NCBI RefSeq assembly: GCF_001194135.2
Contig: NC_068992.1
Coordinates: 9,107,519-9,150,964 of the forward strand
Reading direction: 5' to 3'
Origin: Octopus bimaculoides
Lineage: Eukaryota
Length of the DNA stretch: 43,446 bases
Made by a program: the position numbers and the translations under genes. Positions 1,996 to 31,080 of this stretch are shown one piece after another. Position 1 is the first letter of the stretch. Every line of letters starts with the position of its first letter. Under the pieces are notes generated by a model, which saw only the letters and a program-made list of their open reading frames with translations, ran no database searches and was not told the DNA's origin.

Positions 1996-2031
1996 ATCAG
2001 TGTTGTCTTATATAAGCTTCATGACTTTATA

Positions 2032-2254
2032 CAGGGTTGGTCAAAAGTCACCTGACAGTAAATCAAACCCATTTTAGTTCCAAGATTTATTTATGTTTAA
2101 CAATTGGATGTATTTAATAACAGCGTCTAAATATGAAACTTCATGAAAATTGTTCAAACTGAAGTCCTTCTTGAGTGACACATTTTTCCATTTGAGTCAA
2201 TACAGAATTACAAATAGTATTTATGGAATTTTGAGTGTCATTTGGCCAACCCTG
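2032..2254. mobile_element. Tc1/mariner-type MITE
   Basis: TA target on both sides. TIRs CAGGGTTGGTCAAAAGTCAC and CAGGGTTGGCCAAATGACAC (reverse complement of the right end), 17/20 identical. Confidence 0.8.
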
Positions 2255-4553: not shown

Positions 4554-4749
4554 CCCTTTAGCATTCAGACTATTATGTCAAATGTAATGCTTATTTTTTC
4601 ACATTGTTTTGAAATTAATCATGCATTATTATCTCATATCTTCAAAATTTTAATGATGTAATTATTGCAGGGTGTTTGTGAAAGGCCAGTTTGAACATAA
4701 AACAAGTAGAATTTTTAGGCCAGATGCAGCTGATTTAAATGCTGAAGGG
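4554..4749. mobile_element. TTAA-flanked (piggyBac-like) MITE
   Basis: TTAA|CCCTTTAGCATT ... AATGCTGAAGGG|TTAA. A related end occurs in reverse at ~7570-7615. Confidence 0.7.
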
Positions 4750-7700
4750 TTAAATACAAAATTTCCTGAAATGTTGAGACAACATTGTTTGAAATGTTTA
4801 TCAATTAAAATTGACCCTTTAAATGTTTTGTCTTTTTTCTTGTCAAGGGGTTTGTGTTCATCAAAAAAAAAAAAAACTTACATTTATACAAAATATATTG
4901 ATTTTCTTAATTCAATCTGTTTTCAGTTTTTTTTATTCGATTAAAGATTTTTGTTTTTAAATGTATGTCAGTAATAAAGTGTATTGTAGCCTTAAATTAT
5001 TGGGCCGGCATGGAATACTATATTTTCATACAGTAATTTAATTCAGAGTACCCTTGATGGATTTTGCAAATGTTCTCTCCCTACTACTGCAAAGATGAAA
5101 TAACCCTGCTAGCTAATGTAATACATTTCTCAGGCACTGTGACTCTTGCTGTTTACAGTTAAGGGTGGGAATAACTGTACCTCCCTATCATCCCTTTTTC
5201 AAGATACTTGGACCCATCCATTGAATAAGCTAAGCATATTTATCTAGATTACAGTGCAGTATTGTTACTATTCAGGTAAAAAAACAAACTGTTGACCCAT
5301 CTGACCATTAACAGACATTCTCTCAACCTAACCTGCTGGTCTTATTAACACTAACATGTACTGATCATGTCTAATAATTTTGTGACCTGTCAGCTGACCT
5401 TTTATAAGCACTATAATTTTATTTCACAGATGTGGTGCCTCAGCGTGGCCAGTCTTTTGTTTCTGCTCTAAAACTACATAAAAACACCTTTAAAAAGTGC
5501 CAAAACTATAAAATCTGTTAACTTCAATTCAGTTGAAGTTAACGGAAATTAATTAGTTCAATAATGATTTCGAAAGTTAATTTAAAAGTTAAATCGTTAA
5601 CGAAAATGTTAACTTCGTTAAGTAATGATTTCATGCCCAGGTTTGCAGAATACATATATATACATATTCCTGGAATTAAGTGGTGAAATACAAAGTAATT
5701 TTATAGCCTTATCAAGTTTTAACATCTCCTTTTCACTTTTATATCTAAAACCATAGTAAAATAAAGAAATAAGCTAGCCACACATAAATAAATTCACTTC
5801 GTTTCTGACCACACTTGTGGAAAGACCCTGAAGTAAGGCATAGCAGAATATTGCCAGTTGCATATGTCACTGCACATCCTTTGTGCAGTAGAAACATGTG
5901 TCAGTCATTTCAACCATTTATACTGTGTAATTAACTGTCAGTCCTTTTAAGCAATTACATTGTGCAATTAACTGTTAAAATAAAAAGAAAAATTTGAAGA
6001 TGTACCAGTCTCCATATTCAAAGAATACAGAGACTGGTACACTCTTCTAATTGTTTAAATTATATATATATATATATGCACATATATATATTATTTCAAA
6101 GGTGTATATACCATGCAAGTGATAAAACACAGTATCCTTTCAAAAACACACAAAAGATTCTTAACTTCACTTAAACAGTCATTGTTTGTAATATGGTGTC
6201 AAAATTTTCATTGCTCACAATTGCAACATGGTCTCTGACAATATTACATTGCATCTAACCTTTCACCTTATTAGGTGATACACACACACACACACATATG
6301 TATATATAGTTTGCAAGGTTCTGGGACTATGTTCTCCATTTTTTTTTTTTTTTTTTTTTTTTGCATAGGTCAGTTATTCTGATATATGTGTGGGTCTGTA
6401 TATAATATATGTATATGTATATACACCTGCACATGGTAGCTTCTGTACAATTTGTGTTCACCATCTGTCAATCTGAAGCTATGATAGAAAACAATTGCCC
6501 AAGGTACCAAACACTGATACTAAACTCAGAATTATGTGGTTGTAGAGGGAACTTCTTAACCACACAGCCATGCCTGTGCCCATTATTCGGTAACGCATAT
6601 TACTGGTATTGTTCAATATGTCCCAATGTGTTATTTTAGAAACAAAACTTCAATCTTTTTTCATCTATTTCTATTTCAGTCTGGTGCATTTATATGATTT
6701 AATAATTATGATTATGTCTTTCATTATATACTAAACAAAATAATTTGTCTGGCAATCATGAATGAATGGATACACCTAGCAATACAAATGATGAAACTTC
6801 ATACAAATCTTCTCATACATTTTGTAACGATGAGCAATTTTGTCCATTTTCTTTTTATTTCAAATAAATATTTAAGTAAATATATCTGTGATGCTTTTGT
6901 TGTTGTTCTATAAGTTTAAATGTATTAATACTAATTAATATATTCATCACCCTAATCATTTAACATCCATGGGTTGGACCAGTTTGACTGATTTGTTGGG
7001 TCCAAAGACCGTCTTGTGCTTAAGTATCTACTCTGGCATGGTTTCTATGTTTGGATGCCCTTCCTAATGCCAACCACTTCATGATGTGTACTGCATGCTT
7101 TTCTCATGCCACCAGCACTAAGGAGGTTGCCATGCAGCTCTCAAGCCTGCAAATCCTAAGTGGAGGGGATTTATGCTTGCAGACAAGGGCTAAGACAGAG
7201 CAGGTTCTTGTAAGGGAGCTACATGGCTACTCACACTGATTTCAACTTTGCTGATAGCATCACACTTTTCTCACAATCACAATTGCTCAAACTCTCTTCG
7301 GAAATCTCGAGTCAGCTGCTTTTGAAGTTGGTCTCTCAATAAACTGACTGAAAACAAAAACTATAATCATTGGCGAAAATACTGGTGTAAGTAATCTTAC
7401 ACTTTCATTAAGGGCCCATTGAGTCAGTTGCTGATCTCTACCACTCAGACTGTTGTATTTGCTCTACCAGCATAGACATTAACATTCATTAAGTGATAAC
7501 ATGGTCGGCATCTCACAAGTTATAAAAAATTTGGAAAGCACCACATGCATGTTTAATTCAAAGCAATGTGAATAAGCTTCACATTTAACAGAATAATCTG
7601 AATGCTAAAGAGTTAAGCAATTTTATGCTACAGTTGAAGAAACTTGGTCCAAGTTATGGCATACTGAGATCTGACACAAAACCCTATAGTTACGAAGCAA

Positions 7701-9244: not shown

Positions 9245-9832
9245 TGTTTGTAGGGGACGTATGGCCTGTGGTCCCAGCCTTGGATGAACCTTGAAACTAA
9301 TGTTCAGGTCGTTTGGGCAATACTGGTGGTATATTTTCCACATCGTACAGATGATGTACCGCTTGCGGTAGCACTGGAGAGAGTAGAGCTTCAAGGCTTT
9401 AAGGCGGTCCCAGTAATCAAGATCTGTTATGCCTTCAATTCATTTAGTGAGTGCCCTCTGGGGTGATTCAGTTTTCGAGATGTTTTGTTTTGTATGGAGA
9501 GACCACAAGGGGCAGCAGTATTCGAGGTGTGGCCATACAAAGGAGGAGAAAAGCGGAATGATGACACCTTGTTCTCTGGACCGGAAGGTTCTTAAGATCC
9601 AGGAGTTCATCCTACGAGCTATATTGACCTTACTGTTGATGTGGGCTCTCCAATTGAGATTGTTGTCAACAATTACACCCAGATCTCTGATATTATTAGA
9701 TGCTGTGAGCGGTTCCCCTGAAGGAAGAGAGTATGGCTGTTTTAGTATAGACTTTCTTCCAAAATGCATCAGCTCAAATTTTCCCTCATTCAGTTTCATT
9801 TTGTTTCTGTCTGTCCATATACACAAACACAC
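9245..9832 (-). mobile_element. CR1-clade LINE reverse-transcriptase C-terminal fragment
   Basis: Minus ORF 9440..9862 contains NKMKLNEGKFELMHFG, RDLGVIVDNNLNWRAHI and PHLEYCCPLWS, typical CR1/L2 post-RT motifs. Degenerates towards 9245. Confidence 0.88.
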
Positions 9833-9926
9833 ACACACACACACACACACACAGATGTTCAACTATTTATTGNNNNNNNNNNNNNNNNNNNNNNNNNNNN
9901 NNNNNNNNNNNNNNNNNNNNNNNNNN

Positions 9927-10212
9927 TCCACAGACACGTGTACCCTTAACGAAGTTCTCGGGGATATTCAGCGTGAAACAGTGTGACGAGGCTGACCCTT
10001 TGAATTACAGGCACAACAGAAACAGGAAGTAACGGTGAGAGAAAGTTGTGGTGAAAGAGTACAGCAGGGTTCGCCACCATCACCTGCCGGAGCCTCGTGG
10101 AGCTTTTAGGTGTCTTCGCTCAATAAACACTCACAACGCCCAGTCTGGGAATCGAAACCGCGATCCTATGACCGCGAGTCCGCTGCCCTAACCACTGGGC
10201 CATTGCGCCTCC
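9927..10212 (-). mobile_element. tRNA-derived SINE family A copy (3' part lost in assembly gap)
   Basis: Reverse complement of 37749-38040, with A box TGGCCCAGTGG and B box GGTTTCGATTCCC. Confidence 0.88.
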
Positions 10213-10699
10213 ACGCTCAACTATTATCCCCTTCCAATCTTTTTCTTTCATTTTGTTCTCTTCTCAGAAATCTTATCCCATTGCATTTTTTTGTTTGCTT
10301 GTCTTTTTTTTCTCTCTAACCACCTCCCCTGTCATTATGAGACAATTATTAGCAGGAGAATGCGGCAACCATATCTTACTGCCCGACAGACACACTGACG
10401 GACGGACGGACGGACGGACTGAAAGCACAAATACCAAAACTATAGCAACTAGTGACCACTGCCACTTAAACAGCATTAATCACTGACAATAGTAACTTAC
10501 ACAGAAAAAAATTCAGTTGCTTTTTTGGCTTGACAACGCATATCCACGCCCCTTCCACCCCCTTTAACATCATTCACCCTCCTTGCAAATCTCTCGCTTT
10601 TTCTCTCTCACTGTCTTTCTCTCTATCGCCATCTATGTCAACCTCTGTCCTCTCTCTTTCACTCAAACTCTCACTTCCATCCCTCCCTTACCACTTGAT

Positions 10700-10708
10700 C
10701 TCTTAACC

Positions 10709-10758
<50 letters not shown>

Positions 10759-10917
10759 CTTCTGTGTATGTGTCTATACACACACATACTCATAGAGAGA
10801 GGGAGATAAAGAGAGAGAGAGAAAGAGAGAAGTTAAGAGATCGTGTGTGTGTGTGTGTGTGTCTATACACACACATACTCATAGAGAGAAGGAGATAAAG
10901 AGAGAGAGGTTAAGAGA

Positions 10918-10960
<43 letters not shown>
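10700..10960. repeat. Compound (CT)n/(GA)n/(GT)n microsatellite with a duplicated unit tgtctatacacacacatactcatagagaga..gttaagagatcg(tg)n
   Basis: Two copies of the unit visible, starting near 10770 and 10860. Confidence 0.8.
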
Positions 10961-12008
10961 CCTTCTACCCTTGTCTCTACTCTTTCTTTCGCCTCTACTT
11001 CACATATTCTATCTTTCTTTCCCACACTTGATTTGGCAGAACCCTGTCACTCTCTTTCTTTCTCCCTCTCTTTCCCTTTGCCTTGTCTCATAAATTCTTG
11101 CCATGCACATTAATTGAAAGAACTACAATTTTGTTTTTACTTTTTGAATTGTTTTGTATTGTTTCTTCCAAAACAAGCTGAAGTGGTCAGAATTTAATTG
11201 TGTTGAAATTATTCAAGATAGATATTTAAGACAAAAATTAGAAGAAGGAGAAAGAATTTTTTTTTTTACCCCCTAATAACATGTTATTCAAAAATAATGA
11301 TGACACATTTTTGAGTGAACTGGTGGCCAACTTTCAAAAACTTAACGCTTACTACAAACTATCTTTCACGATAATTTCCAAAAACACAGGAACAAACTGG
11401 AAATTACTGCATGTAAGTTCTCAAACTTTTAACATAAATCTTAACCAAGTTTGTAAATATTGTTTTTAAGTTTGTTTCATTTTCACACATTCATTATAAA
11501 CCTTATCTTTGTGGGTGGAGAGGGAGGTGTTGCCTTCTTGCAAATATGAAAACTTTGTGTATGTGTCCAAACTGGTGCATGTGAGAAGGCTAGTGGTTGG
11601 ATTTTGTCTAGAAATCACAGTCGAGAGGAAGAAGCAACTGCTCGGAATGCAGGATGGTTGGGGATCTTGGTATTACATGATTCTGTTTAGGTGGCATTTC
11701 CCACCCTACAGTGGGTATCTCTGTTTTCTTTTGTTATATATTTGTAATGTTTTCCATATTTATATTGTATTTTTGCTCCTTCCATGATTATTGTATATGT
11801 AATGTACACTCCAATGCATTTTGATTATATGCGTGAGGGCTTCTGTAACCAAAGAAGGAGGTATTGCCATAATGTTTTTTTTTTTTTTTTTTGAGCTGGA
11901 CGGATCATTAGTGCATCAGATAAAATGGTAAATAGCATCTCTTTGGTTCTGCCGAGGTCAACTTTGCTTCTTATCCTTGAACAAGATAGGTTCTGGGGTT
12001 GATTTTAT

Positions 12009-12918: not shown

Positions 12919-13103
12919 GCAGGTGTGATTAAGAAGCTTGCTTCCCAACCTCATGGTCTTGGGTTCAGTTCCACTGTGTGGCATATTGGGCAAGTGTCTT
13001 CTACTATAGTCCTGGGGAAATCAAAGCCTTGTGAGTGGATTTGGTAGATGAAAACTGAAAGAAGCCTGTCATATAAANNNNNNNNNNNNNNNNNNNNNNN
13101 NNN

Positions 13104-13140
<37 letters not shown>

Positions 13141-13325
13141 ATCCCTCACCACCACCTGACAACCAGTACTGGTTCATTTCCGTCCTTGTAACTTAGCAAT
13201 TCAGCAAAAGAGGATTGATAGAATAAGTACCAGTCTTAAAAATTAAATACTGGGGTTGATCTGTTTGCCTTAACACCTTAAGACAGTACTCCAGCATGGC
13301 CACAGTAAAAGATAAAAGACAAACA
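12919..13325 (+). mobile_element. SINE family B (head-central microsatellite-tail), includes gap 13078-13103
   Basis: Head gcttgcttcccaacc..gggttcagt..gggcaagtgtcttctactatag..gccttgtgagtggatttggtag; tail ends ccagcatggccacag..aaaaga. Many other copies in the window. Confidence 0.8.
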
Positions 13326-13734
13326 AAATAGAATTAAATGAATACGGTGGGAATTGAGAGTTTGCTTCTGATATCCTGAACTAGAAGAATCTAGTTGCTA
13401 GAGCTGAGTCAACAAGGGATCATCTTCGGGGCTGTTTAACTTGCTAGAAGTAGCAACCAAATTATCTCCTATGATGCTTAAAAAAAGAAGAGCCTCTAGA
13501 ACAATGTGTATTAAAAGCTGGCATGGGCATGTTTTGAGTAGCTTTGATCAGAGATTACTTTAATCAGGGCTTACCTGGGACCACATAGCAACAACTTGAT
13601 AACAAATAGAAAGATTAAGGTAAAAAATGATTGAATCTTTCATGGATATTATACATATAAGAGAAATAGCAAAGTACGTAAAATAAAATAGTCCCTCAGT
13701 CATAATAATAATGTTTCAAATTTTGGCACAAAAG

Positions 13735-13826
13735 AAGACACTTGTCCAAGGTGCCATGCAGTGGGATTGAACCTGGAACCTGGTTAGGAAGCAAACTTCT
13801 TACCACATAGCCATGCCTGCACCTAT
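13735..13826 (-). mobile_element. SINE family B head fragment
   Basis: Reverse complement of the 29826 head. Confidence 0.7.
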
Positions 13827-13964
13827 ATATCATTGGCTTTTTTTTTTTCTTTCTAAAACTCAAAGTGTATCATATATGCTGGTTTCTTATAATATCATTT
13901 ACATGAAAATAAAAGAAACATTTCTTTCAAAGGATGGATTATAAATTGGTTGGAAATTATTCTT

Positions 13965-13992
13965 TTTTTTTTCTTTTTCTGTCTTTTCCTAG
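13965..13992 (+). other. Candidate splice acceptor for the 5' UTR portion of fusion-gene exon 1
   Basis: Long pyrimidine tract ttttttttttctttttctgtcttttcctag, 210 nt upstream of the ATG. Confidence 0.55.
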
Positions 13993-14202
13993 CATGGTAA
14001 ACATGAGATATGCAGTGCAAGACTTCCACAGCTTGCTAATGTTAAATGGAATATTCCTGGAATGGATGTCTTATAAATAACTTATGCTGAGCTGATGGTG
14101 AATTCTACACTGGATTATTGTATTGGAAATATGTGATAATGAGGAAATCTTACCTTAAAATATCAGTGATGTGACCAATTTTGGTTTGGCTATATTTGTT
14201 AT

Positions 14203-15138
14203 ATGGAAATGGAAACACACAGAACCAACTTTGCATTCATAACAGTCAACTTCATCTTTTCTTCAATTGGTGCTTTAATGTGTTTTATTTCACTTGTGTA
14301 CAAACTCTGCAAGGGAATATCTTTACCAAAATTGTGGAAATATTCCATTTGTTTACTTGATACTTCAGCATTATTCTTTGGAATTGGTCTGGTGATGCAT
14401 CTGTGTATTTTAGTACTCAATGGTACAACTCCCAAATTCCTTGTGTTGGCATCGTCAAGTTTAATGTTGTTTGGATATATGGATGGTTTGTGCTCTTTTA
14501 TTACATTCCAGACAATTCTATTATTTGTACAGAATCCAAGAAAGATATCCAGTACATCAAGCCACCAGCTTGGTTCCTCAATAATAGTACTCACTGGCAT
14601 AAAACTTGCCTGTCTGCTCCTTTCTATCTTGCCAGTCATCCCTAAACAAGACCAACTCAAACCTTCCAGGGGCAACCTCTTCCCTCTTTATGACCCACAA
14701 GAATCTGGGGGTACATACACTTCTCTGTTGGTAATTTGTTTCTGGATAGTCATCATGACCACGTTTATTTTTAGTATTATTGGATTAGTGAAATCCCAGA
14801 AGAAAAACAGCTTGGTACATGATTCCAGTGAAGACGTGCATGTTTCTGTAATATCGCAGGGACAGATGTTACACAAAATACTCCTGGTCGAACAATGCAT
14901 TTACACAGCTGTTAGCATCATGATAACACGACTACTTTTTCGGCAATCGGTTTCGCAGACGACCAACACCAATCACCACGACACAACAATTATCACAGTT
15001 AGCATTTATCTCACACTCCATGGAATTTTCACAAACCTTGGAAATTTTCTGTGGATGAAGAAAGAATGTTGTGGAAAACCAAATGACATTTCACAGGAAT
15101 CTCGTCATCTAAAACGACTGGAACTCTTACGAACGGAG
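14203..15138 (+). CDS. Fusion gene coding exon 1: seven hydrophobic segments (7TM domain) plus linker, 312 aa
   Basis: ATG at 14203 is preceded by in-frame TGA at 14167. Seven hydrophobic stretches. ECL2-TM5 SRGNLFPLYDPQESGGTYTSLL resembles the RXFP/GRL101 G-x-C-F-P-L..G..YS motif. Donor GAG|gtaaaa after 15138, phase 0. Confidence 0.85.
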
Positions 15139-18100
15139 GTAAAAATGTTACGTTGTTTCTGTTAGAGTTGGTTTTATTTATTTATTTTTTTCTTTAATTA
15201 TAATTGATGCTCCAATTATTATTGGTGCAGTTTTTTAATTTCATGCCCTAATATCCGACTTATTTCAATTTCACTGTGAATCTGTTAGATTGAATTACAA
15301 TCTAATTTACAAGGAAACAAAGAAAAAGAAAAGGGGATGAGATTAAGCAGCAGAAGGGATGGGAGGGAATACACCCCCCAGAACAAATGCCATGGTCAGT
15401 TGCACCCTGTGGACAAGACTGTGATGCTGTTGCCATGGAGAATAGCCTGCAACACTCATGGCAGCAGCCATTCCATCTCGCATAGCCTGTTTCTCAGACA
15501 GGCTGCAGCTATCCCCAATATTTTAGAGGAAATTGGCAGTGCATGGTCCAAAAACACCTGTTGGCTTGATGGTGACCAGCAAAAACTGATAGCAGCCAGT
15601 CAGGCCCCCAAATTTGTTTGTGTTTCTCTCCTCTGTGTTATGGGCAACAATATCTGGGTTTGTGGCTGATGCAACAAGGCTGGAGCCAGAGAATATGTTG
15701 CTGCACATCATATGGGGAAAGAGTTATTCCATCAGAGTGCTTTCCATACCTGCAGTTGAGACCTACTGGCTCCAGTTGAGATGGAAAGCTAGTAACATCA
15801 AGGCCCCTTCTAATTATGTCATTCAGAGCAGCATGTCAAGAGAACCAGTCCACTCTATGTGTTGTTAGCTGCTGTCTCTGTTGGCCATCTCCTACAGTGT
15901 CTGTCAATGCTCTCTCTGCTACATCTCAAAGCTCTCTGTCTACTAGTCACAGAGTGTCAAATTTATACTGATTGATAGGCTCAGAAGGAAGCACACCAAA
16001 AATGAACTAATTGTTGGAGCCCGTTCCACGCAAAGTTGTGATTGGTCAGATTTTGTTGATCATGTAGGCAATATTGTAGCAAATTGCAACATTGGGTGAA
16101 TGCTGAATATTCCCACAACATGCTTCTCAAAATATTTCTTTATCCATTTCTGTTTTTGCAATCTTGTTGAATATTGGTCAAGTGGAGTCTTTTTTTGGCA
16201 ATGTCTTTATTAAACCAAACGTTTTGTAGTCCCATTTTTATTTCAGTTTTTTGTTTTTAATACTTTCTGTAATGATTCACAATTCTCTTTATAGCTGTTA
16301 TTTCGGATAACAGAATTAGGTTACTTTTTTTCTATCTTTCTTCATATTTTATAACTATTTGCATTAGTTCCCATTTGTTATTTACAATATATATTTGTAA
16401 TCCAATAGCAGATATTTTATAATAATTTTATAACTGCAGACAACCTCTGCCTCTTTGTATTTATGGGAATATCCATTACTTCTTAGTGAGATTCTGGGTG
16501 GTGTCTTCTAAATGCATTCATTGTTTTCCTTGTTTTTCAATTTTGATTTGACAATCCACCTGACTTCCTGTTGAAAATATAACTATAACTTATTACGAGG
16601 GTAGTTAAACCATCAATACATAGTATCATAACATTCACTTTCATTTTAAAAGTAATCTACTATGTCCATAACATCCTTTACCAATTGTTTTTTTCCATTT
16701 TTTTAAACTCCATCTGCCACATTTTTCAGTATAGAAGTCACTGAAGTATATAGTGTAAACATGTAAACACCTTCACTATCTTATCAAATCCTTCTGAATT
16801 TCACATGGAAATATTGGTCCTCCAGATTTTAATTTTTTTTGGTTGTAAATTTTGATCTGAAAAATCCAACTTGTATACCAGAAAATAGAGTAGTTCATTA
16901 ATTTCTAAGTGTTTGTTAGAATTTAATTATTTTTACTCCATCTAGTTCATTATTTCTTAAGTATTTGTAAGTTTGTATTTGGCCTAAATTTGTTATCTTA
17001 ATTTCTGAATCTAACGAGGTATTACTAATCATATTAATTCTCCACTTTTTAAAGTAGCTTTCGTTTATTTTCCCAAACTGAATTTCATGCCATTTCCCCT
17101 ACAAAATTTTCTTCATATGTTTGTCATCTGCAGCACACAACTTGAGGCCATCAAGAGACCATTGATTATCTCTACTCCATAGCATTTTTATCCGCTTCCA
17201 CTATAGGTGCATGGCTGAGTGGTGTTTGGCTCACAATCATAAGTTTGTGAGTTTGATATCCGGTAGAGCATTGTGTCCTTGAGCAAGACACTTTATTTCA
17301 CATTGCTCCAGTTCACTCAGCTCGCAAAAATGTAATTCGAAAGGCCAGCTTTGTCATATGCTGTGTTACGCTGAATCTCCCTGAGAACTACACCAAGGGT
17401 ACACATGTCTGTGGAGCGCCTAGTCATATGCACAATAATTTCATAAGTAGGCAGTGCTTTTTACATGCCACCAGCACAGGAGCCAGTCAGTGGGTACTGG
17501 CATCGACCACGTCCAGATTATATATGTATATATATAATTCCTGCAGATTTTGTGGCATGACTACATAACATATTCCTGTACTATCACTAACTTGCACCAA
17601 AATGTAATCATACACTGTTTGTTGAGTAGCCTCCTTGACATATTTTCTGATTAAATTTGGATTTTTATGAGGCATCTTTTTTAAGAAAAACCCATCTTTT
17701 AACAATTCAATTTCAAGTTAAATATATTGATAATAGATTGCTCATAAAAAATACCACTAGATTGAGCTGCAACAAGAATTCTCATGAAGTTTCCACAGGT
17801 AATTCAATGATTTTCGTTATTAATGACAGTAGTAGGTTTAATTCAGAAAAGCAATCAGTATATTTTACTTAATGTGGATATAGTGTAAGAAAGCCACAGC
17901 ACTACAGTATTCGTCTTGAGAAAGCATCTCATTTAGACATATAGGTACAATGTTTTTAACCATAGGTCTGTTCAGTCAGAACTAGTATATGGACAAATAA
18001 CAATTCATACAAACTCATGTTGTGTGAGTGTATGTGTGTGTGAGTGTGTGTTTGTGTCTCCTTGGCTTGGCATCTCATGATAGTCGTAAATGGTTGTCAC

Positions 18101-21100
18101 TGTCATACATGCAGTGTCATTCATTTCCAGCAGATTGCAAGAACATGCCTGGCCACAGGGAAATTATTCTGTTATTTGTTATGGATTTCATTAGAACTAT
18201 TTTTATTCTTGACGTGTGTCTGGAAAAGGTAAGTCCTGATTGATTGAGAGAATAGCTTATATCAGAATATATTTCATTGCTATTTTACAGCACTCTGGTA
18301 AACATCACTTCTTAGCTTCTTGGATCGACAACAAGAAATTCCTTCAAACAGGTCTAATGAAAACCTACAGTCAAAATTGGCAGAAACTGTGGGCACAAGA
18401 AATCATGGTTCTTGGAATGTTACGAAAGGTGAAACACCCAAATCTATTGCAATGTCTTTGGACAAGCAACACTAACCCTTATTATGAAATTGTTTCTTTA
18501 CTCAGTCAAGATACAGTTTCTAGTGATTCAAGGTATTACTGTTTTTATCATTCTACCAAATAACCCCATCAAAGATCCAGGCACATCTATAACACACTAC
18601 TATATACTACATACTTACACCCAGTGCAGTCATGGGTAGACTGCAAGCTGTGGGACTCTCTGAATAGCATGCCAAATGAAACATTACCTTTAATTTATTT
18701 AGTTGTGCAGTCCACCTGATGATGAACCATGTCTCATGTGGTCTGCTTCTCAAAAAAGGTTGCCCATGCCTAACCTAGTGCAACAGTTAATAGACTATCA
18801 TTTACAATACACCACTTCCATTTACAACACTACCAACATAAATACTGCTTTCAAATTTTGGCATAAAGCCAGAAATTTCAGGGAAGGGGTTACGTTGATT
18901 ACATTGACCCCAGTACTGACAGTGCTCAACTGGTACTTATTTTTATCGACCCTGAAAGGATGAAAGGGAAAGTCGACCTTGGCAGAATTTGAACTCAGAA
19001 AGTAAAAATTAACGAAATGCCACTAAGCATTTTTCCCGCCATGCTAACAATTCTGCAAACTCACCACCTTATATCAACATAAATATTACCACGATATACA
19101 GCATGCTATCACTATATGAAATGCACAGGCACAACATCAATTTTCTGCAACCTTTGGTTCCAAAGTCATTCTGAACAACTGATTTTCCCAAACCAAATTT
19201 AATTTACTTAAATAATTAAATGAAATACAGGTACATTATTATAAATAACACAGTTTTATCAATTCAGTACTGTGTAAGGTACCAATAGACTAGTCTGGCA
19301 GCTGCAGGAATCTGAAGTTTCTCTTCATATATTAGTGAAGATTATAAGAGTTTTCAGATTATCAATATCTGGAGAGTCAGTGTTCTATCTGTACTAATAT
19401 ATACAAAATTCTACCATTTACCACAAAATATTACCACCTGATGCAAAACACTACCAGTATGTACAACATTACTATTATGTACGGCACACTAGCACCATAT
19501 ACAACACTTTATTGCTATATATAGATTGCAACCACCACATGCAACATGCTATGTACAACGCCTTACTAACAAATACAATACACAACCATCAAACACAACA
19601 CACTGTTACCTAACTTAGTGTACTACCACCTAATGCAAGACAGTGCCACTATGAACAAATATTTTTATGTGTTGTACTTTAATGGTAGTGTGTTGTATAT
19701 TGTGTATGTTGGTAGTGTACAATTATGTGGTAGTAGTGTGTTGTGTACAGTGATAGTGGTTTGTATATCTCTGCCCTTTTCATAATTTATTGATTGTGTC
19801 ATTATTTAAAAACATTTTTATACAATACTAAACAAAGAATAAAATTTATTCTGTTTTGTTTTTAAGGATTATCTGCATGGAATTTCCTGAATATGGATGT
19901 CTACGGGAATATCTTAAGACTATGGAAACTCCACTGTCTGCAGCAACACAGTGTATGATTATAAGCGATGTATCACAAGGTCTGCAGCAGCTACATCGGC
20001 TCGACATTCTACACAAGCATCTCTCTTCAATCAGAGTTTACCTTCGAGGCAACAATGGGAATGTAAGATGTTTATTATTTTACAGAATTTTTTGCAAAAA
20101 AATGTAAATTTGTTTTATATTTGTCAGACTACCTCAACCTTAATCAAAGAATACATGTTTACATGCAGAAAAAGTTGTAGGTTTAAGAAATTTGCTTTGT
20201 AACCACACGGTTCCAGGTTTCATTCCATGGTGTGGCACTTTGAACAGGTGTCTTCTACCACAACTTTGAGATGATTAAGTACCTGGTGAGCAGAATTTAC
20301 TTTTAATGTTCACCTTTCATACTGGCATGGACTGGAGTTTGATAGGATCTGAATAAATTGTATGATGCTTGTGTGTAAACAGCAATACAACATGGTAGTG
20401 ACATGGAGACCATGACTGTAGAGAACATGTAAAGACTAGAAAGGAATGAAGCTAGCATGCTCTGCTGGATGTGCAAAGTCAGCATGCATGAACGACAAAG
20501 AGCAATTCTGTTGAGCAAAAATTGAGCATAAGAGGAATCAGATGTATTGTGCAAGAGAGATGACTGCAATGTTATGGTCACATAATGTATAAGGTGGATG
20601 AAACTAGTGGACAAAGGATACCCAGAAAGACATGACACAAAGTGGCGAAGGTTGATCTCAGGAGTTTGAGTTTCATGGAGGAGATGATGAAGGGCCAGGG
20701 TGTCTGGCTACATGCTGTGCTTGAGAAGATCTGATCATCCTTGGTCAAGTGAAACTGAAGTTCTGGAAGCAACATGTCTCTATACAACTCTCATCTAATT
20801 TCTTCATTTAATGTTTCCTTCACCCCTTATTCTCTATCACTGATCTCTCCAACACTTGCCAACTACAGTGTTCTGTTGCTGTGATTAAATACAGGTAGAA
20901 CTAAATATTCTGTTATGATTTCTGTGACTCCAGTTACCTTTCTCACTACTTGAAACCACTTCAATTGCCTGCCATCCTTCATTCTTACATCATCCTATTC
21001 ATTCACATTTTACATCGATTACTCCACCTTTTTATGCTATAAAATTTCCTCTCCCTCTACCTTTCCACTGAACCAAATCACTGACTTTAGGAATTTAACT

Positions 21101-24100
21101 CAAATTTCATTATAATTGCTGAAGTATTTCGGATGAAATGTTAATAGCCCTATCCAAATCTCACCCTTTCCTGGATCCTTTAGCACTAGGATGAGTATAC
21201 CTTAGAATATCACAAGCTTTACTACTCCTATTCACACATACAAATGAAGAATACAGTCTCATTCTTGTGTTTCATATGTAAGTGTTTTATGTAGAGATAA
21301 AGAATTTCTGTGTGTAGACATACCCATAATTATTATATGATGATGATTAAGTGTGAAATTATTTCTTTCATTTCAGAATTCGTTGTTTCGTGCTGCTCTT
21401 GGGGATTTTGAATATGTAAGCATATTTGGGTCTCTACTACAAGGAGCAGATAACCCAACATGTAAGAGTCGTCAAACATTCTTCCTTCCAGACATTCGAT
21501 CTTTCGCTCTGATTACTCTAGAAATGATTCTGTCAGTATGCAACAAATTAGTCCAAATGCCAAAAAAGAATCGATATCAAAATGTAAAGACACAGAAGTC
21601 TAATCCACAAAGTATATCTGATGTAATGTTGAACAAAGCAACTCAGTGGCAACCATTAGTTAAACCTGAGAATAAAACTGTTGTAAAGGGTAAATTGGGT
21701 TTTTTTCCTACGGCAAGTGAAGAGAGTTTACATAAGAACTGGAGTGAAATGAATCCAAATTCATTGGATAAAAGTAAAATTCCTCAGACACAGCAAAGAA
21801 TAAAAACAATTTTTGTAGCTCCGGCTAATAATGCAAACATTGTGCCATCAGAGTTTTCTACAGGATATTCAAGGCATTCTTCAGTCTCACCTGAAAATGA
21901 AGATTCTCTCAGCAGCAACATTTCTATGCTTGTAGAAGCTGGAAAGGATAGTGACAGTGAAATCAGTCCAACCGAATTCAATGACTTTATTTCACCATAC
22001 GAAGATAACAAACAAGATGACTTCATCTCAGAAAATAAGTTCATTGATAGGAAAACGTCTGTAGATTCTGATCCTTATAATTATCACTGGAGCTTTTTCA
22101 CAAATAAACATGATTATAGCCCTCACAGCTTCTTTTTCAATGAACAATGCCCTAAAAGCTTTTCCGAAGAAAATAATTTAAACACACCAGAAAATAGTAA
22201 AGATGACACACATATGAATGGCGAAACAGCAGCTTTTCATGAGAAAATTCAGAGTCACACAAGAAAAGATGTTAATAACATAGCTGACGAAGATTATATT
22301 TCAGAAGAAAGTCACTTGAGAAAAGTTCAGAGAAAGAATAAAGCAAGAATGAATTTACAGAAAACTCTGACTTCTCGAGGAATGCCTTTTAATCATGTTT
22401 CATCTCAAAAACCAATAAAAGATACCTTTAAAAAAAAGAAACAATTTAATGATACACAGTCCCAAAAACCATCTCTAACTCATATTAGTTCTTCTAATTC
22501 AGTATTGCCAGGGAATAAAGCCATTCTTTCTAATCCTAATAACCATTGTAAACCTTTTAATAATAAAGTCAACAATGAGTTCAGGGAAAATACAAACGAT
22601 TATCAGTTCAGTTGTTCCAGTAGTTATCAAACCAACAACAGCTCTGATTTGGAATCATCTCAGAATTTTTCTTGTGATTACACTACTGATATATCTTGTC
22701 TTTCTTCAGCAACTGAAGCTTTAACTCGAAAAATTCTAAGGGAAGAAAAGTCATTATTTCAAAGGAATAATTCAGCTGACGACATACACAGAAAAATCAT
22801 TGACAGTGGTTTTGAAACAGAATCTAATCCTTCCAACACTTCTAACCAAATAATATGCCATCACAACTCTGAGAAACAGCAATGGCTGGAGAACTGCTTT
22901 GACATGAAAACAAAAGAGGCGGAATTCTTACCAAGTTCAGATAATTATTTATATCTTTCCAACAATAATTTCAGTATGCAAAAGAAATCATGTTTAATAT
23001 CCAACCAAGATAGTCCCATCTATAGTCCTTCTTCAAATAAGAGCAGATTTGTTTATCCAACATCTAGAAATGGTAATAGTTGTTCAAGAAGGGATGAAGT
23101 ATTTGAGACAAGTTCTTATCGAACCTATGATAATAACAAAGTTAGTAATTCTGAACTTCCGTTAATGAAATCTGAATTACAGAATAGCAACAACGCTTCA
23201 AAACGATACAGAGAACTTAAACGTAAAGGTGTACCACTGAAAATATCGATTGTGTCCTCGAATACTTCTTCGAATTTTAACCATTTCTCAAACTGTTCAC
23301 CCAGTATATCAGCGTGTTCAGAAGTCACAACACCGGACATGGATTCCAAAAACATATTTTTCCCTCCACAAATGTCACCATACCCAACAAAGGAGAATTA
23401 CGAGAGAACATGTGATGATTACCAAAGAAAAAATAGTGCCAGTTTATTTAAACAATCACTTGAAGACAGCCCAGTATTTACAACTAAAGTAATTGGAAGC
23501 CCCTGCCCACCTACACCAACAACTACTATCCCTAACTCCCTATTCATGACATCAGAGAGACCAATCCTTGAATCTCGTATCAGTTGTAGTGACATTCCAG
23601 ATTTTGGTGGGAACTGGAAATTTGGACCGAAAGGGAACAATGTGCAGAATCAAGACACAATTTCAGTTCCGAGTCGGCAATTAAGTCGACTTAACAGTGG
23701 AAGTTTATCTCACTGTTCCTCGTTATCTCACCTCAGTTTGCCAGGGAAAACCATTCAAGGAAAATATAAACTTTTACCTGGAGTAAATGAACATCATCTG
23801 GGTTATTGCATTGATCTAGTGGAAAAGCAATCCTTCCTCTCTATAGATGATTTATTACCTGCTTCACAAAGTGCCTTTAACCATCTTAAAGACAAGCTCA
23901 GTGCAACAGGTGAACTAACAAATGCAGCTAAACAGGTAAGGAACTTTGTAAATCTTACAACTCTTCTAGCATTTATCTTGCTTGTGCAGGGTTCACTTAT
24001 TCTACTGATAGATGTTGGTTCAATCAATGCATCATTCAGTCTGATCTGTGAGGCCTGCCACCATCACTTATGCCTTGTAGGACCCATTTCTCACCATAAG

Positions 24101-25187
24101 GAGGTTACTACTCTGAGACAGATTCTGAACTCGGAATGCAAAGAGCCATTTCAGGAATCACAAGGAATCCTGTTCAATGCTGTAATAATCCCTCCTTCAC
24201 TGCCTTTGTGTTTTATTTATTAACCCCAAACAGATAAAAAGCAAAGTTGATCTCAGTGGAATTAGAACTCAGAGAGCACAGAAATCTGTAACAAATGACC
24301 TCATAGTATTTTGGCTAATGCTGTATGATCTCTGAAAAATCATTACCTTTGATTTATATAAAAATTTAATTTACTTTGATTGTGTCATAAACAGTTGAAG
24401 TTGGCAAAGTAATGTTACCGTAGTGACACACAGAGGCTTAGTGAGGACACACAGAGGCTTAGTAAAGCTGATAATCTGGTTATCTTCAGAGACATGAAGG
24501 ACGAACCCTAATATTCTTGTTTAGCTCCTGATTGATTAGAATATAATGAAAAGCATCCTAGTTATGATGACCATAACTCATCCTTCCCTTTCTTTTTCTT
24601 GATATAAACCTACATTGTCTTATATCTTCTCTTTTTCTTTCCTGGTATGATGGGGATATGACTGATATTTTTAGCAGGTTGAGAGACTGCTTAGAGGCTC
24701 ACTCATTGGCATTGGCATATGGTAGAAATTGATTCCAGTACTACAAGTTAACAATACACTCTCAAGTATAAGCCAATGAGGGAGCATCTCTGCAGTCCCT
24801 CAATTTGCTAGAAATGACACTCAAAATATTCTTCAATTCACACCCTACCTTCTTTAATAAAGAAGTATACAGCAGACTATGCAGTTTCTGGAAAACAAAA
24901 GAATCGGATAATCACAGCTAGAATGCTTTTGATCATAGTTCTGCTTAACTAGAGCTTTAAAAATTGTTAGTTTTATGTCTGCATTAGAAATATGCATCAT
25001 AAATATATTAATATATTCTATGATTGTGTCAGTTTATGAAAATGTTGATATATTCTATATATTCTTTCTGTATTTTTTCCTGCAGTTGATGGATATAGTG
25101 GTATCATGCTGGTATGTTGAATCACCTCCCTTGGCAGCTAAACTATGTGAACAGCTGAAGGATCCAGTTATGGAAACAACTGTTTGA
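14203..25187 (+). CDS. 7TM (LGR/RXFP-like) - pseudokinase fusion protein, join(14203..15138,18291..18532,19867..20062,21377..23935,25086..25187), 1344 aa
   Basis: All four introns are GT..AG with compatible phases (0,2,0,0). Summed length 936+242+196+2559+102=4035 nt is a multiple of 3 and ends at TGA. Kinase subdomains appear in the correct order across exons 2-5. No N-gap in the span. Confidence 0.8.
15395..15900 (-). mobile_element. CRE-like non-LTR retrotransposon fragment (restriction-like endonuclease region), degenerate
   Basis: Minus translation HAALNDIIRRGL..PSQLEPVGLNCRYGKHSDGITLSPY, then after a frameshift EERNTNKFGGLTGCYQFLLVTIKPTGVFGPCTANFL*NIG. This parallels CRE-clade H..LND.IRR.L..EP.GL.R.DGKRPDG.T..P and Y.F.P.A.ET.GV.G. 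Confidence 0.6.
16020..17140 (-). mobile_element. R4/Dong-like LINE reverse-transcriptase fragment, heavily decayed
   Basis: Minus-strand pieces GMKFSLGK.TKATLK.GEL, SLDSEIKITNLGQIQTYKYL.NNELDGV and RRHHPES match the R4-clade GM.FG..KC, YKYLG and HHP motifs. Confidence 0.55.
17210..17450 (+). mobile_element. Degenerate SINE sharing its 3' half with family A
   Basis: ctttgtcatatgctgtgttacgctgaatctccctgagaactacaccaagggtacacatgtctgtggag matches 37970-38035. Confidence 0.6.
18291..18532 (+). CDS. Fusion gene coding exon 2: kinase N-lobe (subdomains I-IV)
   Basis: Acceptor tattttacag|CAC; donor AG|gtatta (phase 2). Encodes GLMK (VAIK-like Lys), WAQE (alphaC Glu) and KHPNLL (HPNIV-like). Confidence 0.85.
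18860..19070 (-). mobile_element. SINE family C copy in intron 2 of the fusion gene
   Basis: Reverse complement of the family C consensus (atcgaccctgaaaggatgaaagg..gaatttgaactcag..ctaagcattt). Confidence 0.8.
19867..20062 (+). CDS. Fusion gene coding exon 3: kinase subdomains V-VIb
   Basis: Acceptor tgtttttaag|G completes the AG+G Arg codon; donor AAT|gtaaga (phase 0). Encodes IICMEFPEYGCLREYL (hinge), DVSQGLQQLH, and ILHKHLSSIR at the HRDLxxxN position. Confidence 0.88.
20285..20780 (+). mobile_element. RTE-clade LINE ORF remnant
   Basis: Translates with frameshifts to LYDACV..HGS..RLERNEASML.WMC.VSMHERQ..L..KLSIRGIRCIVQER.L.CYGH, the RTE post-RT region. Same family as 30026-30102. Confidence 0.7.
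21377..23935 (+). CDS. Fusion gene coding exon 4: kinase VII and IX, ~740-aa low-complexity insert, start of subdomain X (853 aa)
   Basis: Acceptor tttcatttcag|AAT; donor CAG|gtaagg (phase 0). Lies within the 956-codon ORF 21353..24223. AALGDFE is DFG-like; PDIRSFALITLEMI is subdomain IX-like. Confidence 0.88.
25086..25187 (+). CDS. Fusion gene last coding exon: kinase subdomain XI-like and PDZ-binding C-terminus
   Basis: Acceptor ttttttcctgcag|TTG, phase 0. LMDIVVSCWYVESPPLAAKLCEQL resembles the kinase L..LM..CW......F..L..L pattern. Ends ETTV-stop. Confidence 0.8.
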   Translation: MMDIVVSCWYVESPPLAAKLCEQLKDPVMETTV

Positions 25188-28948: not shown

Positions 28949-29261
28949 AATGATAATAATAACAATAACAATAATAATATTAATAATAATAATAATAGAA
29001 GAGTGCCATTTGCTATCTCATGAACAATATTTCGACATCTTGCGTGTCTTCCACTGGTTCAAAAAATAANNNNNNNNNNNNNNNNNNNNNNNNNNNNNNN
29101 NNNNNNNNNNNNNNNNNNNNNNNNNNNNNNNNNNNNNNNNNNNNNNNNNNNNNNNNNNNNNNNNNNNNNNNNNNNNNNNNNNNNNNNNNNNNNNNNNNNA
29201 AAAAAAAAATAATAATAATATTAATAATAATAATAATAATATGCTTTTACAGAAAGAAGAG

Positions 29262-29515: not shown

Positions 29516-29825
29516 NNNNNNNNNNCCCCCCCCCCCCCACACACACGTGAATATACTCCTATACATTGGAGATTCCTTAAGATTTTGATACTATGAAAGT
29601 ACTTTAATTGAAGGATTATTCTTTTCATAAATTATTTTGTTTTCTGATTCCCCCACCCATGGCATACAATAATTAAATATGAAAGCGAAATGTAATTATG
29701 TCTATTAAAAATATTTCTAGCCACACGTTAATATTGCTAGGGAACCAATAATACAAATTAATTTTTATTACAATTATAACCTATATAATTATATATAACC
29801 TTATATAACCTAATAATTATAACAT

Positions 29826-31080
29826 AGGTGCAGGAGTGGTTGTGTGGTAAGTAGCTTGCTTCCCAACCACATGGTTCCGGGTTCAGTCCCACTGTGTGGC
29901 ACCTTGGGCAAGTGTCTTCTACTATAGCCTCGGGCCGACCAAAGCCTTGTGAGTGGATTTGGTAGACGGAAACTGGAAGAAGCCCGTCGTGTATGTATAT
30001 ATATATATATATATGTATGTGTAATGTCAATGTGAATACCCGTCAGAGTGTAAGTATCTTGAGAGAAAAGCTGAACATTAGAAGCATCAGTTGTGGCGTG
30101 CANNNNNNNNNNNNNNNNNNNNNNNNNNNNNNNNNNNNNNNNNNNNNNNNNNNNNNNNNNNNNNNNNNNNNNNNNNNNNNNNNNNNNNNNNNNNNNNNNN
30201 NNNNNNNNNNNNNNNNNNNNNNNNNNNNNNNNNNNNNNNNNNNNNNNNNNNNNNNNNNNNNNNNNNNNNNNNNNNNNNNNNNNNNNNNNNNNNNNNNNNN
30301 NNNNNNNNNNNNNNNNNNNNNNNNNNNNNNNNNNNNNNNNNNNNNNNNNNNNNNNNNNNNNNNNNNNNNNNNNNNNNNNNNNNNNNNNNNNNNNNNNNNN
30401 NNNNNNNNNNNNNNNNNNNNNNNNNNNNNNNNNNNNNNNNNNNNNNNNNNNNNNNNNNNNNNNNNNNNNNNNNNNNNNNNNNNNNNNNNNNNNNNNNNNN
30501 NNNNNNNNNNNNNNNNNNNNNNNNNNNNNNNNNNNNNNNNNNNNNNNNNNNNNNNNNNNNNNNNNNNNNNNNNNNNNNNNNNNNNNNNNNNNNNNNNNNN
30601 NNNNNNNNNNNNNNNNNNNNNNNNNNNNNNNNNNNNNNNNNNNNNNNNNNNNNNNNNNNNNNNNNNNNNNNNNNNNNNNNNNNNNNNNNNNNNNNNNNNN
30701 NNNNNNNNNTTGGCGTTAGGAAGGGCATCCAGCTGTAGAAACTCTGCCAAATCAGACTGGAGCCTGGTGTTGCCATCCGGTTTCACCAGTCCTCAGTCAA
30801 ATCGTCCAACCCATGCTAGCATGGAAAGCGGACGTTAAACGATGATGATGATGATGATGTGTGTGTGTTTGTGTCTGTTTGTCCCCCCAACATCGCTTGA
30901 CAACCGATGCTGGTGTGTTTACGTCCCCGTAACTTAGCGGTTCGGCAAAAAAGACCGATAGAATAAGTACTAGGCTTCTAAAGTATAAGCTCTGGAGTCG
31001 ATTTGCTCGACTATAAAGGCGGTGCTCCAGCATGGCCACAGTCAAATGGCCACTGAAACAAATAAAAGAGTAAAAGAGTA
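29826..31080 (+). mobile_element. SINE family B split by an RTE LINE insertion: head 29826-30012, RTE 30026-30858 (gap 30103-30709), tail 30860-31080
   Basis: Head and tail match the 12919-13325 copy. The insert starts with RTE coding NVNTRQSVSILREKLNIRSISCGV and ends with the (GAT)n tail. Confidence 0.8.
30103..30709. other. Assembly gap (other gaps: 973-1269, 9873-9926, 13078-13103, 29070-29199, 29516-29525)
   Basis: Runs of n. ORFs spanning them are artefacts. Confidence 0.99.

Follow-up and report, generated by a model that had tools for sequence, protein, structure and literature searches.

We analysed a window of 43,446 nucleotides from Octopus bimaculoides (NCBI RefSeq assembly GCF_001194135.2, contig NC_068992.1, positions 9,107,519 to 9,150,964 of the forward strand); all coordinates below count from its first base. 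The gene at its centre, LOC106876778, lies on the forward strand and encodes one polypeptide in which a seven-transmembrane (7TM) domain is joined to a kinase-like domain, an architecture of which we are practically certain. An initial annotation, made from the sequence alone, had proposed such a fusion between a 7TM domain like that found in G-protein-coupled receptors (GPCRs) and an intracellular kinase or pseudokinase, in a single chain of 1344 residues. That product is identical to XP_014780971.1, "uncharacterized protein LOC106876778 [Octopus bimaculoides]" in RefSeq, and the UniProt entry for the same protein is A0A0L8GI26, "Protein kinase domain-containing protein". The gene model has been public since the octopus genome annotation and is not new.

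Structure and transcription of LOC106876778

The gene begins with a 5' untranslated region (UTR) exon (11093..11412), to which the first 320 nucleotides (nt) of a transcript contig from sequencing run X1 map before they jump to 13993; the 5' end of this exon is a minimum, and a GTAAGT donor stands at 11413. The following exon (13993..15138) contains the start codon (ATG 14203) and encodes the entire 7TM domain (residues 1-312). The same exon also has in-frame stops ahead of this ATG, which indicates that the N-terminus is complete and that the protein has essentially no ectodomain. The open reading frame (ORF) of the 7TM domain spans 14203-15165 (320 residues), with a GT donor at 15139 directly after codon 312. 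Intron 1 (15139..18290, GT..AG) falls in phase 0 at the boundary between the 7TM and kinase parts, a position kept across molluscs, and is followed by the kinase N-lobe exon (18291..18532), an exon for the hinge, helix E and catalytic loop (19867..20062), a large exon (21377..23935) and the last coding exon (25086..25187); the 3' UTR extends past 25600. When spliced, the five coding exons give a coding sequence of 4035 nt, corresponding to 1344 residues and a stop codon; each of the four coding introns is bounded by GT and AG and has a polypyrimidine tract. None of the kinase exons supplies a start codon, and the 7TM exon already encodes LKRLELLRTE, a conserved strand at the entry to the kinase N-lobe, as the initial annotation had recognised.

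Transcript assemblies agree with this model. Logan contigs, which are assembled from short reads, from runs X1 (2962 nt) and X2 (5564 nt) include all of its junctions. Around the end of the 7TM exon (14900-15171), runs X1, X2, X8 and X4, which come from four studies, each yielded a single contig that matches up to 15138 and then goes on with CACTCTGGTAAACATC..., the bases from 18291; the longer continuation after 15138, CACTCTGGTAAACATCACTTCTTAGCTTCT, likewise equals the sequence from 18291 onwards. Contigs from all four runs leave 15140-15171 uncovered (depth zero), so that the in-frame 15138|18291 junction predicted in the initial annotation is used in each of them, with zero read-through to the stop at 15165. 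Runs X13 and X14, from another species closely related to this one, also have contigs that end at the same exon boundary.

A mollusc-wide family with a conserved domain order

An exhaustive HMMER search of 1.84 billion representative proteins with a profile of the 7TM domain, made from two cephalopod sequences only, returned 17 matches; EukProt is listed among the sources of the related protein collection. Ten of the 17 matches are long proteins (984-1846 residues) in which the 7TM domain is N-terminal. All named matches are molluscan, and the remaining matches are unnamed contigs. The family comprises a cephalopod member from Argonauta hians, bivalve members from Argopecten irradians, Pinctada imbricata and Solemya velum, and gastropod members from Patella caerulea, P. 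vulgata, Biomphalaria glabrata, B. pfeifferi, Plakobranchus ocellatus and Haliotis asinina; in addition, the 90%-identity cluster of the query includes Octopus sinensis LOC115217889 and O. vulgaris. Orthologous models with the same domain order are present in at least 10 mollusc species, and the searches made gave no sign of paralogues. Judged by these sequence matches, LOC106876778 is the octopus member of a mollusc-wide family. Word-indexed homologue searches returned a few exon-level ORFs from unannotated contigs, without architecture or taxonomy, and the family came from the exhaustive HMMER search.

The fusion itself is conserved in these relatives. Several members are uninterrupted ORFs of 1309-1846 residues on Logan contigs of 4-7 kb, which are so short that they must, we infer, be spliced transcripts and which would thereby provide independent support for the fusion at the RNA level in other species. 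Moreover, the first-exon ORFs on genomic contigs of seven species run into a Val codon (GTx) right after an ...L-x-x-E/D junction (...IE or ...VD), and exon-2 and exon-4 ORFs from further species begin and end at the octopus exon borders. These shared exon ends suggest that the phase-0 intron at the domain boundary is ancient. The orthologous 7TM exon of a related cephalopod lies at 10001-10972 on a contig (ENA ERZ21867824) with no kinase exon within 10 kb downstream; because transcript-derived ORFs of a close relative (about 93% identical over the overlap) have the fusion, intron 1 is probably much longer on this contig. The same contig carries an RVT_1 retroelement ORF upstream, at 4744-5103.

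In the databases the members are named "uncharacterized", "hypothetical", "protein kinase domain-containing" or, wrongly, "LRRK2". The label "leucine-rich repeat serine/threonine-protein kinase 2" stands on KAK6999801.1 (Biomphalaria glabrata) and GFO27475.1 (Plakobranchus ocellatus). No leucine-rich repeat (LRR), Roc or COR domain was found by Pfam in any member scanned, and we regard the LRRK2 name on these gastropod orthologues as a mis-annotation derived from the best kinase match. An LRRK2 orthologue was rejected as an identity for the octopus protein on the same grounds, namely that LRR, Roc and COR domains are missing. We also searched the literature and found no paper that cites the family accessions and none that describes a mollusc 7TM-pseudokinase; the question raised in the initial annotation, whether the fusion is conserved or already annotated, is thus answered by conservation across molluscs and by the RefSeq and UniProt entries, and no well-described family claims the protein in the database and literature searches. 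A conserved mollusc-wide family of GPCR-fold pseudokinase proteins therefore appears to be undescribed in the literature searched.

The N-terminal domain is predicted to adopt a GPCR fold

Family-averaged hydropathy gives seven hydrophobic segments (TM1 to TM7 at about 14218-14301, 14341-14418, 14440-14526, 14566-14637, 14710-14790, 14875-14943 and 14974-15054). An AlphaFold2 model, computed with the insert described below deleted and from 17 aligned sequences, contains seven long helices (predicted local distance difference test (pLDDT) about 75-93), and the seven segments counted in the initial annotation are thus recovered in full, not as a bundle of fewer than about six. All 50 matches listed by Foldseek against the PDB are class A GPCRs (E about 3e-5 to 2e-4), with a TM-score per target of 0.57-0.71 for nearly all of them over about 280-300 columns and at 9-16% identity; they include S1P1, LPA1, GPR6, CB2, MC4R, GPR3, A2A and the mu-opioid receptor.

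The sequence of the domain does not show this resemblance. Scans of the 7TM part of nine members against Pfam, with E-values up to 1 admitted, gave no match, so that of the Pfam families expected from the initial annotation PK_Tyr_Ser-Thr was matched and 7tm_1 was not. A sequence search of the PDB matched no GPCR by the 7TM domain, and an hhalign comparison with bovine rhodopsin (sequence entered by hand) was not significant (E 0.2, probability 0.3%). The drawn rhodopsin alignment aligns the TM1 Asn, the TM2 Asp, the TM3 Cys and a Cys in extracellular loop (ECL) 2, and at a non-significant score we take this as a lead only. The family alignment contains none of the DRY, CWxP and NPxxY motifs, and the end of TM3 reads QNP(G/R)K. 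What is conserved instead is a TM1 Asn (in most members), a TM2 Asp, PKLWK in intracellular loop (ICL) 1, QNPGK in ICL2, a long ICL3, a His and a Trp in TM7 and a Cys cluster directly after TM7, together with polar residues within the membrane (D53, E230, H273, W181 and W284). On the strength of the model we conclude that the domain is likely to have a GPCR fold, yet it cannot be recognised as belonging to class A or to a Pfam 7TM family. The reading as a canonical class A GPCR was rejected, given that there is no 7tm_1 match and no DRY, CWxP or NPxxY motif.

An orientation with the N-terminus outside and the C-terminus inside is supported by three features of the sequences. In members with a complete N-terminus, lysine and arginine together number 8-12 in the three intracellular loops and 1-5 in the N-terminus plus extracellular loops; N-x-S/T sequons are present in the N-termini of gastropod members; and a pair of cysteines lies on the extracellular side. 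The initial annotation had based this orientation on an NGT sequon at 14419..14427, which does sit in the TM2-TM3 loop (ECL1). The orientation stands, and the sequon is weak evidence for it because it is not kept in relatives, not even in Argonauta and hence not even within octopods.

The extracellular cysteines lie one at the top of TM3 and one in ECL2. Both of them occur in 13 of 13 non-cephalopods, and neither occurs in any of the 3 cephalopods, including the octopus protein. Joint presence and joint loss are as expected of a disulfide pair, which would correspond to the classic GPCR bridge between TM3 and ECL2, and are consistent with the loss of such a disulfide in the cephalopod lineage. 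In the octopus gene the sites that match the lost pair fall in ECL1 and the top of TM3 (14419-14460) and in ECL2 (14638-14709).

A pseudokinase interrupted by a long insert follows directly

The juxtamembrane linker (15064..15138) consists of the Cys cluster ECCGK, which reads CCC in most relatives, followed by LKRLELLRTE, and the pseudokinase N-lobe starts about 17 residues past TM7. The N-lobe exon encodes a degenerate glycine loop (HSGKHH), the beta3 Lys motif GLMK (18351-18368), the helix C Glu motif WAQEI (18390-18404), HPNLL and a conserved beta4-beta5 insert. HKH replaces HRD at 20012-20020 in the next exon, and the large exon opens with GDFE (21401-21412), followed by PDIRSFAL and helix F from 21488-21511 onwards.

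All members tested match PK_Tyr_Ser-Thr with 31-35 bits (gathering cut-off 23.1), in an alignment limited to profile positions roughly 44-150, and hhalign against the ABL1 kinase domain (sequence entered by hand) gives 91% probability from HPNLL to the catalytic loop. In a profile search of the PDB, the family is nearest to LRRK2 and LIMK1 (7e-8), then to PLK4, the TYK2 pseudokinase domain, LIMK2 and MLKL, which places the kinase part in the tyrosine kinase-like (TKL) group. Across Pfam, hhalign and the PDB, significant kinase similarity covers only about residues 339-455, from helix C to the catalytic loop, and removal of the insert does not lengthen the Pfam or hhalign alignment beyond profile position about 150. 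The initial annotation had read kinase subdomains II-XI in order; this is borne out for the central core (about residues 339-455), and the outer subdomains, for which motifs and the order of predicted secondary structure are the evidence, are plausible. No PIP5K domain was matched by Pfam in the members scanned, and a GPCR-PIPK was rejected as a candidate since that domain is missing.

Three residues are invariant in the family: the Lys of beta3 (GLMK), the Glu of helix C (WAQEI) and the Asp of the DFG motif (GDFE). In 11 of 11 members, the HRD Asp is replaced by His (HKH, octopods) or Asn (H-x-N, elsewhere), the catalytic-loop Asn by R, C, S or A, and the glycine loop retains a single Gly. 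Because HRD Asp, catalytic-loop Asn and glycine loop are missing in every member, the kinase part is, by the usual criteria applied to its residues, a pseudokinase. Together with the inferred cytoplasmic C-terminus, this agrees with the intracellular kinase or pseudokinase of the initial annotation.

After helix F, within the putative C-lobe, comes a variable low-complexity insert, predicted to be disordered, which measures 700-1250 residues in the family, with about 730 residues in octopus (21560-23746, inside the large exon) and up to about 1250 residues in bivalves. Four islands within it are kept from octopus to snails: a basic stretch K-A-R-x-x-L-K-x-A-L (KARMNLQKTL in octopus, 22340-22369), [ST]-L-S-S (DISCLSSA, 22688-22711), [IV]-D-S-G-F-[DE]-[ST]-x-S (DSGFETES, 22802-22825) and R-Y-R-E-L-x-K-x-G-V-P-L-[KR]-[IV]-S (KRYRELKRKGVPLKISIVSS, 23201-23260). 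The third island matches the DSGxxS consensus of beta-TrCP phosphodegrons.

The insert is followed by a conserved C-terminal module of about 90 residues, which in octopus opens with LLPGVNEHH (from 23771) and in the family reads LL-x-G-[VM]...H...C...DLLPA...Q-L-[LM]-D-[IV]...CW...PP...QL-x-DPV-x-ET-x-[VL]. Its motifs (LLPG..., CW..PP) and predicted helices come in the order of kinase helices G to I. The last coding exon contributes LMDIVVSCWYVESPP, which resembles kinase subdomain XI, and the tail DPVMETTV (25161-25184) before the stop codon. All 10 full-length members end in ETTV, ETEL or ETEV, which fits a class I PDZ ligand ([ST]-x-[VL]-COOH) and makes this end a putative PDZ ligand. Conservation is highest in the last eight residues (0.84) and amounts to 0.65-0.79 in the pseudokinase N-lobe, 0.58-0.67 in the intracellular loops, 0.40-0.56 in the TM helices and 0.27-0.46 in the extracellular loops.

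Other features of the window

Introns of the gene contain high-copy repeats (13104-13940, 17270-18110 and 18900-19360), over which the word depth in RNA contigs is 10^3 to 10^5. These blocks take part in many chimeric joints (for example 13139 to 18021) and look like interspersed elements that are abundant and transcribed. The window has six assembly gaps (runs of N), at 973-1269, 9873-9926, 13078-13103, 29070-29199, 29516-29525 and 30103-30709, one of which falls in the intron that separates the 5' UTR exon from the 7TM exon.

Low-depth transcript contigs without splicing form a chain over about 5 kb upstream of the 5' UTR exon (1678-6882); they could derive from a neighbouring gene, as its long 3' UTR or as an intron, or from a transcript that is not annotated. 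A 140-residue ORF on the reverse strand (9440-9862) adjoins an assembly gap and a (CA)n tract; it has no Pfam match at E up to 0.01, and our impression, which is only that, is of a fragment of a retroelement ORF. Downstream, a Ser/Lys-rich ORF of 442 residues on the forward strand (40686-42014) ends in ...VPCPVCEKRVPENLINQHLDECLSMK with a C-x2-C...H-x3-C pattern, which resembles a UBZ-type zinc finger; it has no Pfam match at E up to 0.01 and is probably an exon of the downstream neighbour gene. No tRNA-like genes were found in the window.

Discussion

Our analysis establishes the octopus gene as one representative of a family in which a predicted GPCR-like bundle and a pseudokinase share one chain. 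How such a protein might work is less settled, and we consider the chances about evenly balanced that the 7TM bundle is a receptor which signals through the attached pseudokinase as a scaffold. In this scheme, a small or lipid-like ligand would be bound within the helix bundle, as suggested by the missing ectodomain, the short loops and the lipid receptors among the nearest structural neighbours. Binding would alter the cytoplasmic face, where the loops are better conserved than the rest of the 7TM domain, and the directly attached pseudokinase, itself the most strongly conserved domain, would read this change and serve as a conformational switch. The output would be the recruitment of partners to the pseudokinase, to the insert motifs and to the PDZ ligand, with no phosphotransfer, and the protein would be localised through PDZ proteins and possibly be subject to regulated turnover. 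Such a mode of action would resemble that of RYK, ROR and PTK7 or of the kinase-homology domain of receptor guanylyl cyclases. The protein would in this way use its own scaffold instead of G proteins, as the initial annotation had also suggested.

A stronger version of this proposal can be formulated, which we put forward tentatively and think somewhat unlikely to hold as a whole. It would see in the family a bilaterian GPCR-fold receptor in which coupling to G proteins has been replaced by a covalent pseudokinase transducer, docked beneath the bundle, able to read agonist-driven changes of the cytoplasmic face and supplied with a scaffold by the insert and the PDZ ligand, so that it would constitute a third mode of 7TM signalling beside G proteins and arrestins. 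The arrangement would have arisen in the mollusc stem and, apparently, have been kept since then as one gene per species.

Several points weigh against a receptor that acts through its pseudokinase. Significant sequence similarity of the 7TM domain to any GPCR is absent from the Pfam scan, the PDB sequence search and the rhodopsin comparison, and AlphaFold may prefer GPCR-like packing for any seven-helix bundle. The pseudokinase is poorly modelled, with pLDDT of 35-55 in the N-lobe and a mean of 52.7 in a kinase-only AlphaFold model, and Foldseek matches that model to kinases at E 0.01 or worse with a TM-score of about 0.17. Moreover, both the putative contact between 7TM domain and kinase and the proposed completion of the C-lobe by the C-terminal module are read from motif resemblance and secondary-structure order only. 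Loss of canonical residues is not strictly proof of inactivity. Finally, expression of the gene is low in the runs examined.

These points leave room for other explanations, among which a conventional orphan GPCR fares best. The protein would then couple to G proteins or arrestins, and pseudokinase, insert and PDZ ligand would form a regulatory or localisation tail for trafficking, clustering on PDZ scaffolds or turnover. This would suit the fold matches, which include class A receptors bound to G proteins, as well as the conserved TM2 Asp, the TM1 Asn of most members, the TM3-ECL2 Cys pair of non-cephalopods and a Cys cluster after TM7 like that at GPCR palmitoylation sites; the PDZ-type end and the DSGFxS motif resembling a beta-TrCP degron would also be at home in such a tail. 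However, DRY, CWxP and NPxxY are all missing, and the N-lobe follows TM7 at a distance of about 17 residues and is better conserved than the receptor; one would not expect this of a passive tail, and the site for G proteins would be crowded. We consider a conventional receptor rather unlikely.

Alternatively, the 7TM domain might sense no ligand and act as a membrane anchor or oligomerisation module that positions the pseudokinase scaffold at the membrane. Its short and poorly conserved N-terminus and extracellular loops (0.27-0.46), the loss of the extracellular Cys pair in cephalopods and the lack of sequence homology to ligand-binding GPCRs are all compatible with such a role. A single helix would, however, suffice for anchoring, whereas seven helices, the intramembrane polar residues D53, E230, H273, W181 and W284 and the predicted GPCR-like fold have been kept in three mollusc classes, and we regard a mere anchor as distinctly unlikely.

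It is also conceivable that the kinase domain is active by a non-canonical mechanism, in which case the protein would be a 7TM receptor kinase in the true sense. Kinases such as WNK and CASK are active although canonical residues are missing from them, and the beta3 Lys, helix C Glu and DFG Asp of the mollusc proteins are invariant. Against this, no member across the divergence of molluscs retains the HRD Asp, the catalytic-loop Asn, the glycine loop or the APE motif, and no nearby compensating acidic residue is conserved; we hold catalytic activity to be very unlikely.

That the fusion is an artefact of annotation or assembly, such as neighbouring genes joined by read-through or by chimeric contigs, is extremely improbable: the RNA support does come from short-read assemblies, which can be chimeric, and raw reads of X20 and X21 cover the gene at near-zero depth, but four runs, each from a different study, share the same canonical GT-AG junction and show no other continuation, the 7TM exon encodes the first kinase strand, a start codon is missing from the kinase exons, and architecture and intron position are shared by at least 10 mollusc species. 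Two separate genes and a read-through chimera were both rejected, given the spliced junction in four runs and the conserved fusion.

Animal receptors with an intracellular kinase-type domain are single-pass, with few catalogued exceptions, and the mollusc family extends the architecture of 7TM-kinase fusions into Bilateria. A dead but extremely conserved kinase about 17 residues from TM7 would offer a natural test of conformational signal transfer from a helix bundle to an attached fold. The hosts include octopus, oysters, scallops and Biomphalaria, the snail vector of schistosomes, and offer tractable neurobiology and genomics. Mollusc GPCR catalogues depend on Pfam 7tm models and would miss this candidate orphan receptor, and, on the practical side, several database entries mislabel its orthologues as LRRK2.

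Comparison with known systems

The predicted fold of the mollusc 7TM domain is shared with class A GPCRs, especially lipid/MECA-type receptors such as S1P1, LPA1, CB2, MC4R and GPR3/6 (TM-score per target up to 0.71), as is the N-out orientation, and the TM3-ECL2 Cys pair of non-cephalopods, the mid-TM2 Asp and the Cys cluster after TM7 are class A-like features. Unlike class A GPCRs, the domain has no Pfam 7tm_1 match and no DRY, CWxP or NPxxY motif, and its profile match to rhodopsin is non-significant.

On the kinase side, impaired kinase folds occur in RYK, ROR, PTK7, ErbB3, the kinase-homology domain of receptor guanylyl cyclases and MLKL, which are single-pass or soluble. The mollusc protein would likewise be a membrane receptor with an impaired kinase fold that signals by conformation or scaffolding. 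MLKL has a non-HRD catalytic loop and a GFE motif that replaces DFG, for which the mollusc counterpart is DFE. To our knowledge, none of these pseudokinase receptors or modules is joined to a 7TM domain.

Proteins in which a 7TM domain does precede a kinase-type enzyme in one chain are known from other lineages. In the GPCR-PIPK proteins, such as Dictyostelium RpkA and Phytophthora GK4 (PMC5784254), the C-terminal enzyme is a lipid kinase acting on phosphatidylinositol phosphate (PIP); this was the comparison drawn in the initial annotation. Fusions of a 7TM domain with a kinase are placed by the current literature in protists, choanoflagellates and sponges, and for none of them is there a functional study (PMC12716839). 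GPCR-TK proteins, whose kinase is a tyrosine kinase (TK), are found in choanoflagellates and sponges (PMC12716839), and a few GPCR-type transmembrane kinases of the TK clade occur in sea urchins (PMC10463195). The statement in the initial annotation that no characterised metazoan 7TM-protein-kinase fusion is known accordingly holds for functional characterisation and needs to be amended for occurrence, as such fusions have been catalogued in choanoflagellates, sponges and sea urchins (PMC12716839, PMC10463195). These proteins share with the mollusc family a 7TM-kinase fusion within Holozoa or Metazoa; their kinases, however, belong to the tyrosine-kinase clade and have strong matches to metazoan TKs, whereas the mollusc kinase is nearest to TKL kinases (LRRK2, LIMK, MLKL) and lacks catalytic residues.

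The closest parallel in architecture is provided by the GPCR-bigrams with TKL kinases of oomycetes (PMC6033456), amoebozoans and ciliates (PMC10463195) and by the GPCR-TKL/K proteins of acanthoecid choanoflagellates (PMC12716839). Like the mollusc protein, GPCR-TKL(/K) bigrams have an N-terminal 7TM domain followed by a C-terminal TKL-type kinase, with no need for an ectodomain. Their 7TM domains have no homology to the mollusc 7TM domain that was detectable in the HMMER search with the profile of two cephalopod sequences, and the mollusc kinase differs from theirs in that it is dead as judged by its residues, has a giant insert that splits it, terminates in a PDZ-type ligand and resides in a bilaterian host. 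GPCR-kinase fusions have arisen repeatedly and independently, with none functionally characterised (PMC12716839), and the mollusc fusion looks like one more independent origin.

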